From positions 372,001 to 436,000 of the forward strand of contig OZ025656.1 in the NCBI GenBank assembly GCA_964019335.1: 64,000 nt of DNA. Reading direction: 5' to 3'. Below, piece after piece: positions 984 through 44,866 of the stretch. A program made the position numbers and the translations under genes. This stretch comes from Diplonema japonicum. Its lineage: Eukaryota; Protista; Euglenozoa: Diplonemea. The notes under the pieces are model-generated. The model searched no databases, was not told the DNA's origin, and saw only the letters and a list, made by a program, of their open reading frames with translations. Within the stretch, counting starts at the first letter, position 1; each line of letters opens with the position of its first letter.

Positions 984-1711
984 ATGTCAAAAATACTCCG
1001 AAGGACCGGACCGCTACTGTACCCTAAAATTGTTGCAGACAAGGTGCGTGGCCCGTTGGGAGAGCAAGCCCCATTGAGAAACCAAGGTACAGATTTGGAC
1101 TGGTGGCTATGGTTATGCCCCGATATCAGGCCGGAAGCACCAGCAAATAGAGGATTTGCGAGGACAAGACCTATGGTACCCCCTATAATCACTTCGAGGA
1201 TGACCCTGCGTAACATCTCAGAGCTCCACGTTCGTTACTGTCCTTTCTTGATCGGTGGGGACGAATCCGTGAACGGGAGCGTCCAGCAGGTTATCCACTA
1301 TCTCAACAGCTACGACTGTCGGAAAACGAATCCTAAGGCCGTCATCACCATCGAGACCACAACCGACTACCGCCCACCCGAGTACATCTTATATTTCAAG
1401 AGTGGTATCTCCTTCACCCTTCAAGAGTGGTCAGGGGCCACCGCATCTGAAATTATCCAGGCCCTTCAACGGCGGGAATACGAAGAAACCGCTGACTGCA
1501 TCGCTAGAGACGAAGAAATCGACACGTTTCACTGGGACGAGAGCTTCGATCAGGTGTGTATCATCATTGGAAGGGGAAAAAAAAAAAAAAAAAAAAAAAA
1601 AAAAAAAAGGGTTTGCTGCACATTCCGTACGTGTTGGAATACCACAAGAACCGACCTATTTTGAGTAACTTTAAGAAGAGATTAAAAGCTTGGAAACTCA
1701 TTAAAAAATAA
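984..1711 (+). CDS. Mitochondrial large-subunit ribosomal protein mL53-like (2 exons: 984-1553, 1610-1711)
   Basis: ISELHVRYCPF...YLNSYDCRKTNPKAVITIET..D..PPEYILYFKSG matches the MRP-L53 family pattern. Basic N-terminus resembles a mitochondrial presequence. Removing the poly(A) intron replaces a poly-Lys artefact with GLLHIPYVLEYHK...KK-stop. Confidence 0.65.
1554..1609 (+). other. Spliceosomal intron, 56 nt, GTGTGT...GGAAGGGG(A)32G
   Basis: CAG|GT and AG|G boundaries, phase 0. Removal gives an open, normal-composition 33-aa C-terminus. Confidence 0.75.
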
Positions 1712-1834
1712 AGGGGTTTTTTTTGAAGGGGGGGGATAGTGTTGTAATTGCGTATATTCTCCCCCCCCCCCCCTCCCTCTTTTTTTTTTAAATTTCTCAC
1801 GGGAAGAAAAAAAAAGGATGCAAAAACAAAAATA

Positions 1835-2749
1835 ATGAGACTCCCTGACCTGTGTATAGCCTCATCATCGGTGTCGAAGAAGAAGGAGGGCCTGACTGGG
1901 GGGGTGAAGGAAAAACGCAAATTCTTGAAACTCCGAAACGACCGTCCCATTCCAAAACCTACAATGCTTCCGCCAGTACAACGGAAGAAATATGTTAACG
2001 CCCTGGACAGCATCAAGGTGATGGACGAGCTGGAAAGATCGCTTACCGTATCTAAGGAGACGGGGAAGGTGATCTACCCGACGATGGATTGTTTCATTGA
2101 ACACATGAAGGAAGAGGTTTCGAGTGGGTTGAACCGGCTCCGCCCAGGCGACGGCATCGACGCCAGCAGCGCGCGGTTTGAAATTTACAAAACCGTTTTT
2201 TCAAAGATAATGCGGTACGCAACAAGGCTCGACCCTTTGCTGTCTGTGGTTGATGAGGGCTACCAACGGCATGTGAACACCTTGCTGAGCGCATTGGCAT
2301 CAAAGAGACGAGAGGACACAATCGCACTAATGTCATCCGTGTCCACTTCCGACATCGGCCTTGATCCTATACCTGACGAAGCACCTGCTTCAACACCTGA
2401 AACCGGCGATGACGACGCCCACACACCAGAAGACCTTCAGAGTAAAGTCGACGAACTGGAACTAATCACACGACTCTTCCTCACAGCGATACAGGACAAG
2501 GACAAGGAAATTGCTGACCTTCGGCACAAAATACACGTTCTTGACACACCCGCAGGTCTCGAGCACGCGATGGAGGCGGAGAAACGGCTCGCGGAGCAGA
2601 CACAGCACGCCTCGTCTGTAAAAAAAAAACTGTTTGAATCGCAGCAACATTGCGAACAGCTTGCGATGGAGACGTCAAGCTTGAAAGCAGAGCTGGAGTC
2701 TTACAAGAAAGAGATCCTTCGTTTGCGTCCTTTTCACGAATTTTCGTGA
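1835..2749 (+). CDS. Coiled-coil protein with TSNAXIP1 N-terminal-like domain
   Basis: RFEIYKTVFSKIM...LDPLLSVVDEGYQ resembles the translin-associated factor X-interacting N-terminal motif. C-terminal heptads. Confidence 0.5.
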   Translation: MRLPDLCIASSSVSKKKEGLTGGVKEKRKFLKLRNDRPIPKPTMLPPVQRKKYVNALDSIKVMDELERSLTVSKETGKVIYPTMDCFIEHMKEEVSSGLNRLRPGDGIDASSARFEIYKTVFSKIMRYATRLDPLLSVVDEGYQRHVNTLLSALASKRREDTIALMSSVSTSDIGLDPIPDEAPASTPETGDDDAHTPEDLQSKVDELELITRLFLTAIQDKDKEIADLRHKIHVLDTPAGLEHAMEAEKRLAEQTQHASSVKKKLFESQQHCEQLAMETSSLKAELESYKKEILRLRPFHEFS

Positions 2750-2961
2750 TCAGCAAAAAAGAAAAAAAAGGGGGGGGGGACAATGCATTACCATGCGTTA
2801 GGAGGGGGAGGGGGAGGGGTGGTTTTTTTTTTTTGTTGTATGAATTTCTTCTTGAACAGTGAGCAGCACTGAAATCTTATCGAGTTTTCTTCTTTTTCTT
2901 CTTCTCCCCCAGCTGTTTCATTTTCACTCGATGAATAAAGAGAAAAAAAAAAAAAGAAAAA

Positions 2962-4000
2962 ATGGTTCGTCTCGGGATTAACGGGTTCGGTCGTATTGGG
3001 CGTCTTGTGCTGAGGGCTGCCCTGCAGCACCCTGATGTGGAGGTTGTCGCATTGAACGACCCTTTCATCGAGGCCAACTACATGGTGTACCAGTTCGGGT
3101 ACGACACCGTGCACGGGAGGTACAAGGGCGAGGTCAGCCACGAGGGCAGCAACCTCATCGTCGATGGGAAGAAGATCAAGGTCCACAACTGCAAGGACCC
3201 CTCCACCATCCCGTGGGGCGCTGACGACGTTGACATCGTAGTGGAGTCGTCGGGTGTGTTCACCACCACCGAGAAGGCAGGCACCCATCTGACGGGGGGC
3301 GCCAAGCGTGTCATCATCAGTGCACCCTCTGCTGACGCGCCAATGTTCGTGATGGGTGTGAACGAGGAGCAGTTCAAGCCCGACATGAAGGTGATCTCGA
3401 ACGCGTCATGCACGACGAACTGCCTTGCACCTCTCGCGAAGGTGATCCACGACAAGTACGGGATCGTGGAGGGGTTGATGACAACCGTGCACGCGGCAAC
3501 AGGGACGCAGAGGGTTGTGGATGCACCGTCTGCGAAGGACTGGCGTGGGGGGAGGTCTGTGTTCAACAACATCATCCCGTCGAGCACAGGTGCGGCGAAG
3601 GCGGTTGGGAAGGTCATCCCATCGCTGAACGGGAAGCTCACCGGGATGGCCTTCAGGGTCCCCACACCCGATGTGTCGGTCGTTGATCTCACAGTGAGGC
3701 TCGAGAAGGGCGCCACCAAGGAGGAACTCGACAAGGCCATCAAGGAAGCCAGCGAAAGTGAGAAATTGAAGGGCATCCTTGGCTACACAGACCTGCCCCT
3801 TGTCTCTTCCGACATGCTCCAGACAACATTCTCTTCTGTTTACGACTCCCAGGTATGTGATTTATAAAAAAAAAAAAAAAAACCAGGCCTCCATCTCCCT
3901 CAACGACAACTTCGTGAAGCTCATCTCGTGGTACGACAATGAGTTCGCCTACTCGTGCAGGGTGATCGACCTTGCTGTTTACGTGTCGCAGAAGCAGTAG
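2962..4000 (+). CDS. GAPDH: Glyceraldehyde-3-phosphate dehydrogenase, GapC type, copy 1 (exons 2962-3852, 3887-4000)
   Basis: [29 protein letters not shown]. Splicing restores YDSQ|[19 protein letters not shown]. Confidence 0.97.
3853..3886 (+). other. Spliceosomal intron, 34 nt, GTATGT...(A)17CCAG
   Basis: Removal restores a GAPDH C-terminus colinear with the intronless paralogue at 6106. Confidence 0.93.
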
Positions 4001-43198: not shown

Positions 43199-43356
43199 TA
43201 AAAGAACGGAGGGAGAGAATAAAAAGGTCATAAGTGTATTATTATCGGGGTTTTTATTTCCCCCTCCTCCCCCTTTTTTTTAGAATTGTTTATCGACTGG
43301 GTTGGGGAAAAAAAAAAAAAAAAGCGAAAAATAAATACACACAATAAACACAAACT

Positions 43357-43656
43357 ATGACCCACGTGTACCCCCGATACGGCGCTGATGGGAAGCCCTC
43401 CCAACAGCAGGATTACGTGCATCCCACAGGCCAGCTTCTGAATTATTATTACCCTGGAAGGTCACAGATGGCATGCGGTGGGCAGCAGCAGCAGCGGCCT
43501 GCCCCGCAGTTTATACCGCAAGGTCAACACTGCACACAGGTGTGTAAGGTGAAAATGTGGGAGGCACCACCTCCTATGCAAGTTTGTATTACATGCAACA
43601 CTTGCGTTTCGCAGTGCGGGGTGCAAGCTGTGCCTCTGCAGGGTTTTGGACACTAG
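43357..43656 (+). CDS. Small Gln/Pro/Cys-rich hypothetical protein (99 aa)
   Basis: GC-balanced ORF with ATG after an A-rich tract; CxxxC and CxxCxxC clusters. Confidence 0.5.
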   Translation: MTHVYPRYGADGKPSQQQDYVHPTGQLLNYYYPGRSQMACGGQQQQRPAPQFIPQGQHCTQVCKVKMWEAPPPMQVCITCNTCVSQCGVQAVPLQGFGH

Positions 43657-44324
43657 TTGAGGGGGAGAAAAAAACGATGCTCGTACCGATTAACCTAACC
43701 TTCCCCTCCCCACCTTGTACCCCTTCTCCCCCCCCCCCCCCCCCCCCCCCCCAAGGAATGAGTTGTGGCAGGACTCGTGAAGTCTGCCTTTACCATGGTC
43801 GGGTTGAATCATAGGTTTAAAAAAAGAGATAGAAAGAAAAAAAAAAGAAAAAGAAGAAGAAAACGACTGAGTGGTGAATCTCGCTCGACCTAACCTTTCT
43901 CTCATTCGCTTTCTCTCTCACGCTCTCCCCCCTCCTTTTGTTTTGTTTTTTCTTCTTTTTTTCCTCCGCCCGCTTACCTTTCCTGTTGTCATAAGAGAAC
44001 ATATTCAAAGAAAAAGAAGAAAAGAAATTGTAAATCTGACTGTATCCTTTCCTCCTTTTGTTTTATTAGCTCTTCTTTTTTTTTTTTTTTTTTTTTTTTG
44101 GGACCAATGTTTCCAACCTCCCTGTGGTTCGGTAATTGTGGGTAGGAAGACGACACAGAAAGGGAAACTCTCGCCCTCCTCGGGGACTTGGGAGGCAACG
44201 GGGTGAAGAGCTTCACAAGGGTGGCCTGTCGCTGCATGGCACCGCTAAAATCAACGAGACAACTTTTTGTTTTTTTTTCCCGGCAAACAAAAGGGGAACA
44301 ACTAAAATAGGAGGGGAGGTAAAT

Positions 44325-44866
44325 ATGTTGCGATTAGGAAGCGTAGCGAAGAGTGCAGTGACGGTGGCCGGCGGGTTGGAGGGGCAGAAGCGAGGACATA
44401 AGGATGGTAAGAGAGCGCAGATTTTGTCGTGGAGTGGGTTCACACATGTATGTGAGGGAGGGAAAAAAAAAAAACACACACAGCCCCGTCTTCACGGTGG
44501 TGCGGAGAAGGACAGCCAGGCTTGGATGCTGAACGGGCCAACTCCAAGGCGGCCAGGATCGTACACTCGACGACCTGTTTCTACAAAACGGGCGAGACCC
44601 CACCTTGACCCTTTTGTGTTCAAGTACGTGGGTGTGAAGACCGATGCAAGAGGGCGTCCCATCATGGATGCGTCGCGAAAACATAGGGAGAGCGAAATTC
44701 GGCATGAGTTCAGGTTTGTTAAGGGAAACAAAAAAAAAAAAAAAAAAAAAAAAAAAGGTCACTTCTCACCGAGCGCAATTTCCACGGCTTCCCTCTGCTT
44801 TACTACCAAGCCCCAAGGCCCCACGACAACGTTTGGAACGCGACGGAAAAATGGACCGGGGTCTAG
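44325..44866 (+). CDS. Small basic hypothetical protein, likely mitochondrial (exons 44325-44447, 44484-44713, 44758-44866)
   Basis: MLRLGS...QKRG presequence-like start. Removing two A-tract introns gives a clean ORF ending EKWTGV-stop. Confidence 0.7.
44448..44483 (+). other. Spliceosomal intron, 36 nt, GTATGTGAGGGAGGG(A)12CACACACAG
   Basis: Same architecture as the homology-supported introns; in frame and stop-free. Confidence 0.72.
44714..44757 (+). other. Spliceosomal intron, 44 nt, GTTTGT...(A)27G
   Basis: AG|GT...AG|G. Removal shifts into a sensible C-terminal frame. Confidence 0.75.

Follow-up and report, generated by a model that had tools for sequence, protein, structure and literature searches.

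Mini-introns with a poly(A) tract in place of the polypyrimidine tract at a Diplonema japonicum locus: junctions, anatomy and probable mechanism

The locus and its A-type mini-introns

The window analysed here is the 64,000-nt stretch OZ025656.1:372001-436000 (+ strand; also labelled G000:C9:372001-436000) of the Diplonema japonicum genome assembly, which comprises 62.5 Mb in 132 contigs and has a GC content of roughly 50%. Nearly all long open reading frames (ORFs) of the window lie on the + strand, as expected of euglenozoan polycistronic arrays, and among its genes are those for an orphan protein, two GAPDHs, an ankyrin-anoctamin protein, a desaturase-like protein and a PARP6/8-like protein. 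In textbook 3' splice-site recognition, U2AF65 binds a pyrimidine tract at the end of the intron. The subject of this work is a set of eight very short introns of the window, here called A-type, in which a run of A is found near the 3' AG. Their positions in the window and their structures are as follows.

1554-1609 (+), A-type intron of 56 nt, GTGTGT..GGAAGGGG-A32-G, phase 0, in an orphan 223-aa gene with exons 984-1553 and 1610-1708
3853-3886 (+), A-type intron of 34 nt, GTATGTGATTTAT-A17-CCAG, in GAPDH copy 1, codon 297/298
13100-13148 (+), probable A-type intron of 49 nt, GTATGGAGGGGGG..A25-G, in the ankyrin-anoctamin gene, ahead of the last 28 codons
14750-14796 (+), A-type intron of 47 nt, GTATGGAGTGGGGAAGGGG-A27-G, 94% purine, in the desaturase-like gene
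34999-35042 (+), A-type intron of 44 nt, GTATCC..A15-G-AAAACAAAACAG, 13 nt from the run to the CAG, phase 1, in the PARP6/8-like gene
36451-36495 (+), A-type intron of 45 nt, GTATGGGGAGGG-A28-CACAG, phase 2, in the PARP6/8-like gene
44448-44483 (+), A-type intron of 36 nt, GTATGTGAGGGAGGG-A12-CACACACAG (A12CACACACAG), phase 0, with an in-frame length
44714-44757 (+), A-type intron of 44 nt, GTTTGTTAAGGGAAAC-A27-G, phase 2

All eight segments lie where an earlier reading of the letters alone (hereafter, the sequence-only reading) had placed them, and their anatomy agrees with its description. They are 34-56 nt long and consist of 74-94% purine throughout, so that none contains a polypyrimidine tract; their A runs of 12-32 nt stop 1-13 nt short of the 3' AG. 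The run makes up one third to two thirds of the intron, leaving a non-A core of 17-29 nt. GT..AG borders were found in all eight, as well as in two further introns of the PARP6/8-like gene described below. The donor is GTATG in five cases and GTGTG, GTTTG or GTATC in the remainder, which amounts to an extended consensus apparently suited to U1 pairing and in agreement with the published (G)/GTATG logo (PMC12621601).

Four of the introns end in (A)nG, and their final 26-40 nt are purine only, which bears out the earlier claim that they carry no pyrimidine in at least the last 25 nt. Also as claimed, a GGG+ patch precedes the A run in six of the eight, and GGAAGGGG is common to introns 1554 and 14750; this sharing is low-complexity similarity and not the mark of a family. 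The statement that no branch consensus is visible held for seven of the introns, which lack a YTNAY motif, and failed for 3853, which has one. In 36451, the adenosines located 12 nt or more from the donor and 7 nt or more from the acceptor all fall inside the A tract, and the other A-type introns have only 1-6 adenosines at such distances outside it.

The statements made here about the whole genome draw on a 264-kb sample, on pattern counts and on the publication PMC12621601. On both strands genome-wide, the base following an A run is G in about 57% of cases, so that an AG usually comes with the A run itself. Ending in (A)nG is thus a property of the genome's homopurine tracts and is not specific to introns.

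Evidence for splicing

The sequences used to test splicing were those of four D. japonicum Trinity proteins (P0001, P0121, P0147 and P0148) and contigs from four sequencing runs. Of the latter, X5 and X9 are DNA-like, X1 comes from a relative with about 97% identity, and X8 was labelled RNA-like on the strength of its 47-nt junction at intron 14750. Exons were searched singly and not as joined spliced models.

Seven of the eight A-type introns are spliced out at exactly the predicted junctions in transcript assemblies or RNA-like contigs. For 1554-1609, P0148 reads ..DESFDQ/GLLHIPYV.. (the slash marks the junction), which equals exon 984-1553 joined to exon 1610-1708, and the window protein of P0148 is 100% identical to EukProt EP01064_Diplonema_japonicum_P024491. 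P0001 is 100% identical across ..SVYDSQ/ASISLND.., the junction left by removal of 3853-3886. Both introns of this type in the PARP6/8-like gene are missing from P0121, which reads ..LIAQLNQ-K-ISCRVPREG.. across 34999-35042 and ..CENWHS-I-LRNGLYN.. across 36451-36495. P0147 covers the last two, with ..SWSGFTH/PRLHGGA.. for 44448-44483 and ..EIRHEF-R-SLLTERNF.., including the predicted change of frame, for 44714-44757. For 14750-14796, X8 record 18 (0 mismatches) and X1 record 5 show 9 letters versus 56 genomic ones, corresponding to the removal of 47 nt, while DNA-like contigs of X5 and X9 extend into the intron; the coding scores on its two sides are +13.5 and +14.5 bits. Therefore, the GAPDH, desaturase and PARP introns, which the sequence-only reading had regarded as firmly supported, are real, being spliced in P0001, in the X8 and X1 contigs and in P0121, respectively.

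The junction of the eighth intron, 13100-13148, is only consistent with splicing: the alignment of an X1 contig extends exactly to 13099, where the exon ends, a DNA-like X9 contig continues to 13110, and the far side lies in a masked repeat. The gene in question (7250-13232, + strand) would encode about 1,980 residues, with ankyrin repeats fused to an anoctamin/TMEM16 domain, and its Anoctamin domain lies 5' of the intron.

The lengths of the A runs given above are approximate, as the short-read contigs of all runs break within them.

The GAPDH genes form a tandem pair of cytosolic type at 2962-3999 (copy 1) and 6106-7125 (copy 2), with proteins that are 85.6% identical. Copy 2 (coding 6106-7104) is intron-less, and the intron of copy 1 must therefore have been gained, or that of copy 2 lost, since the duplication.

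Other intron types in the same gene and in the sample

The PARP6/8-like gene (34755-36932, + strand) contains four introns, all missing from P0121: two of A-type, one of pyrimidine type and one mixed. The latter two served as comparators.

36015-36071 (+), pyrimidine-type intron of 57 nt, GTATGC(TTTTC)n..TTTTTAACAG, 18% purine; P0121 reads ..FEPFPT/IFDPDN.., and tblastn leaves a gap of 19 residues
36813-36849 (+), mixed A-rich intron of 37 nt with no run, GTATGTGTAAAACAG..TTTGCAG; P0121 reads ..FAFDS-N-HQPNKYL..

Because this gene also splices out a pyrimidine-type intron, the A tract is one tolerated or preferred solution and not a rule that has replaced the usual one.

Intron composition was examined in the sample of 264 kb out of 62.5 Mb, made up of the window and 200 kb of contig C1, which is coded mostly on the minus strand. 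Intron finders based on codon usage and on ORF junctions were too noisy, with antisense calls equalling sense calls until strict filtering was applied; intron statistics were therefore taken only from the strictly filtered set, for which the antisense control gave 0-1 calls, and from a run-centred comparison of A and T runs. In the 200 kb of C1, A-rich and T/C-rich mini-introns were both predicted. The last 20 nt of the 32 high-confidence predicted short introns of the sample (antisense control, 1 call) are composed of 46% A, 24% T, 19% C and 11% G. An A run of 8 nt or more is present in ten of these introns, and a T run of 8 nt or more in four. Introns with A runs are thus the largest class, at roughly one third, and there is no universal rule.

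Strand bias of A runs

Homopolymers crowd the non-coding DNA: runs of at least 10 nt on the + strand of the window number 75 for A, 64 for T, 12 for C and 5 for G. The longest homopolymer of the window is an unbroken 55-nt T run at 5936-5990, between two + strand genes.

The sequence-only reading had proposed to compare A and T runs in introns with those in spacers, and the two proved unequal only where coding sequence flanks the run. In the run-centred test, A or T runs of at least 10 nt were required to have coding-like open frames on both sides, with thresholds of 8 or 10 bits. On the sense strand, coding-flanked runs comprised 21 of A and 5 of T at 8 bits, and 14 and 1 at 10 bits, versus a near-equal 251 and 238 for all other runs (Fisher test of coding-flanked versus other runs, p=0.004 at 8 bits and p=0.001 at 10 bits). 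Within these transcription units, 57 A runs and 55 T runs were counted in the regions that follow stop codons, which makes a transcription-coupled mutational bias an unlikely cause of the A excess.

A pattern search over the whole genome pointed in the same direction. The pattern GTATG-N5-30-A15G gave 696 matches versus 300 for its reversed control. For the analogue GTATG-N5-30-T15, rough per-strand counts, partly inflated by overlapping matches, were 417 versus 246 for the control, which suggests an excess about half that of the A runs.

Components of the splicing machinery

The sequence-only reading had asked whether U2 snRNA or U2AF65 might be lost or divergent. At least seven full-length copies of U2 snRNA were found, with a top RF00004 score of 141 bits, and the 5' region agrees with the consensus, the GUAGUA that pairs with the branch site included. 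This canonical 5' half led us to reject a loss or divergence of U2 snRNA. GUAGUA would pair poorly with poly(A), and branch selection in the A-type introns would then have to lean on proteins.

U2AF65 is not lost either, in accordance with the published presence of U2AF1/2 in D. japonicum (PMC12621601). Its orthologue at C19:431190-434139 comprises an RRM1 tail, RRM2 and a normal UHM, and UHM and RRM2 have U2AF65 as their best match in PDB. In RRM2 of this candidate, RNP2 reads KLVMSGF versus KLFIGGL in human, and RNP1 reads KACCVFEF versus KGYAFCEY. V, C and V thus stand at the three RNP positions where RRM2 of human U2AF65 has aromatic residues, a hint, from the protein alignment, that RNA binding could be altered. 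The frame directly upstream of RRM2 reads ..TNKKKKKKKTG.. and looks like a read-through A-type intron.

Another splicing factor is encoded in the window itself. The gene at 37822-39723 (+ strand) is RBM39/CAPER-like, with two RRM_1 domains and the RBM39 linker, and is the genome's second-best match to the U2AF large-subunit model; the N-terminus of its product is an Arg/Asp-rich repeat that derives from GACAGG repeats.

The 60 nt 5' of ATG codons in the 264-kb sample are A-rich (37-45% A) and contain many A runs, and positions -150 to -60 are 55-58% pyrimidine. This composition fits a predicted pyrimidine tract of the spliced-leader acceptor followed by a short A-rich leader.

Other features of the window

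At 16001-16800, the summed contig depth in X5, X8 and X9 is tens to hundreds of times that of single-copy neighbours (in X5, about 660,000 versus about 1,000), and this segment is probably a high-copy repeat or organelle-like sequence; the ORF at 16025-16465 had no Pfam match. An Rfam scan of the whole window gave no match.

Mechanism, origin and alternative explanations

The reading we favour, with a probability of about 0.6, is that the A-type introns are U2-type GT-AG spliceosomal mini-introns of ordinary mechanism, with a homopurine low-complexity tract as their body. A strong donor of the GTATG type, often followed by a G-rich patch, would lead into an A run that reaches the acceptor or comes close to it, and intron definition would operate over the very short span that separates this donor from a (C)AG close by. 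The A tract would supply the branch adenosine: with few or no sterically allowed adenosines outside it, there is almost nowhere else for the branch to lie, provided that the lariat forms at an adenosine. The sequence-only reading had suggested the tract as a source of branch adenosines, and this idea now gains support by elimination, most directly from 36451. The A tract could in addition serve as an unstructured, AG-free spacer that lifts the 17-29 nt core to a spliceable length, and it could provide its own AG, since the genome's A runs mostly precede G. The tracts most likely arose by the homopolymer slippage that fills the non-coding DNA of this genome, and selection, or the ease of intron formation, may then have retained A over T on the sense strand.

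Several observations weigh against this reading or narrow it. No length compensation was seen between the A run and the remainder of the intron (n=8), and 34999 splices at a CAG 12 nt beyond the AG that directly abuts its A run, so that the choice of acceptor is not simply that of the first AG after the tract. Placing the branch within the tract is an argument by elimination that presupposes minimum distances. Neutral slippage alone predicts equal numbers of A and T runs, which is what the spacers show, and does not account for the preference for A on the sense strand of this organism, which also trans-splices. Finally, the intron predictor is crude, the sample covers only 264 kb of 62.5 Mb, and the exact lengths of the A runs are unconfirmed by short reads.

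The A tract could instead be an active, recognised 3' signal, read by a U2AF65 of altered specificity or by another A-binding protein, while a pyrimidine tract plus AG would mainly mark spliced-leader acceptors. The V/C/V residues in RRM2, the strong sense-strand A bias confined to genes, the pyrimidine content of 55-58% at 60-150 nt 5' of start codons followed by an A-rich leader, and the description of A as 'significantly conserved' in D. japonicum polypyrimidine tracts by Thakur et al. (PMC12621601) all point this way. Nevertheless, pyrimidine-type introns are cis-spliced in the same PARP6/8-like gene, A runs of 8 nt or more are absent from about two thirds of the confident short introns, and the substitutions in RRM2, which was compared with the human protein only, may be general to Euglenozoa; on balance, we consider an active signal unlikely. 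A more elaborate version, which we regard as doubtful, assumes two 3' splice-site codes in one nucleus, in which pyrimidine tract plus AG would serve mainly trans-splicing and a minority of introns, and an A tract housing the branch adenosine would mark most new cis-introns and be read by a re-tuned U2AF65, its RRM2 devoid of the aromatic RNP residues, or by a dedicated A-binding factor. If this were true, the A tract would be a genuine signal, protecting cis-introns against use as trans-splice or polyadenylation sites. The same sense-strand preference for A over T could also be explained by a fail-safe, in which ribosomes translating an A run left in the mRNA would stall on the poly(A)/poly-lysine track and the unspliced message would be destroyed, which would be useful where nonsense-mediated decay (NMD) that relies on the exon junction complex (EJC) operates weakly. 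Stalling of ribosomes on poly(A) tracks is established in other eukaryotes. Such a fail-safe would also account for the tolerance of in-frame, stop-free introns such as 36451 (45 nt) and 44448 (36 nt), and kinetoplastids are reported to have a non-functional EJC and to have lost NMD factors; however, the idea is purely inferential and many introns have no run at all, which makes it very improbable in our view.

As to the origin of the runs, the introns could be introner-like and derived from retroposons: a retroelement or retrocopy truncated at its 5' end would have landed in the sense direction, its poly(A) tail would be the A run, and the AG would come from the target-site duplication. Two GTATG..A(n)G segments elsewhere in the genome, C2:848615-848656 and C4:232966-233004, indeed have GTATGTGACAGGATCGC in common ahead of the A run, the exon end CCAG recurs at the end of intron 3853, and the intron of GAPDH copy 1 is missing from copy 2. 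On the other hand, the 5' body of 1554 occurs only once in the genome of 62.5 Mb, that of 14750 has 10 matches with up to 3 mismatches versus 5 for a reversed control, and the bodies among the 100 genome matches listed are heterogeneous. Outside 3853, the exon end and the intron end share only 0-3 nt, which is within the expectation of the AG/GT consensus, and G-flanked A runs are equally common on both strands outside genes. As the tested bodies (1554 and 14750) form no family, a repeat-family or retroposon-tail origin is not supported as a general source; we consider it improbable, and local homopolymer or homopurine expansion is the simpler origin. The chance that the runs are assembly errors or that the segments are kept in the mRNA is negligible. 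Homopolymer lengths are error-prone and the contigs of all runs break at the tracts, but the DNA-like contigs of X5 and X9 enter introns 14750 and 13100, the segments are missing, cut at exact GT..AG borders, from the RNA-like contigs and from four independent Trinity proteins, and the same feature has been published from independent data (PMC12621601). Retention of the segments in transcripts, which had been named as an outcome that would overturn the sequence-only reading, is ruled out for seven of the eight introns, and for these the artefact explanation is already refuted.

Altogether, these introns are removed with no pyrimidine tract near the 3' splice site, so that their recognition must work independently of a U-rich tract at that place, as the sequence-only reading had proposed. 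That introns with nothing but purines in their last 25-40 nt are routinely spliced shows that the textbook pyrimidine-tract rule is dispensable and makes D. japonicum a natural system for studying how the branch and the acceptor are chosen in its absence.

Comparison with known systems

In introns of the Trichomonas and Giardia type, the branch site is fused to the 3' splice site in a strongly conserved motif, ACTAACACACAG. The A-type introns resemble them in having no polypyrimidine tract and a branch region that adjoins the acceptor, and 36451 and 44448 (A(n)CACACACAG) have CACAG-like ends; however, the D. japonicum introns contain a homopolymer in place of a branch motif, and four of them end in (A)nG. 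The short introns of yeast, ciliates and nucleomorphs are recognised by intron definition, with the pyrimidine tract dispensable or absent, and are AT-rich or carry a strong UACUAAC. They are like those of D. japonicum in being very short and poor in polypyrimidine tracts, but we know of none among them with a pure A run of 12-32 nt and a G-rich 5' half in a genome of about 50% GC.

McCullough and Berget reportedly described G triplets as intronic enhancers in small vertebrate introns, and the G-rich patch that soon follows the donor in six of the eight A-type introns is reminiscent of them. The likeness here is one of sequence only, and D. japonicum intergenic DNA has frequent G runs as well. 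The non-conventional introns of euglenids and hemistasiids belong to the same phylum and likewise have unusual signals, but they lack GT-AG and their ends are base-paired, whereas the A-type introns have GT-AG borders and fall outside that class; at 74-94% purine, they would have little scope for end pairing.

The closest comparison is with D. japonicum itself. Thakur et al. 2025 (RNA 31:1826, PMC12621601) analysed 10,131 RNA-seq-supported introns of this species, of which 98.3% are GT-AG and the median length is 41 nt. The motif YTRAY was present in 13.9% of these introns, A was the commonest base in the 'polypyrimidine' tracts, and the spliceosome was judged adaptable. The phenomenon and the core inference are therefore already known for D. 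japonicum, and the window gives confirmation and detail rather than a discovery. While Thakur et al. worked with sequence logos, the present analysis describes individual anatomies, with their homopurine bodies and (A)nG ends. It adds junction-level confirmation, the coexistence of A-type with pyrimidine-type introns, the contrast in A:T ratio with the spacers, the absence of repeat families for the tested bodies, the canonical U2 snRNA and the substitutions in RRM2 of the U2AF65 candidate.

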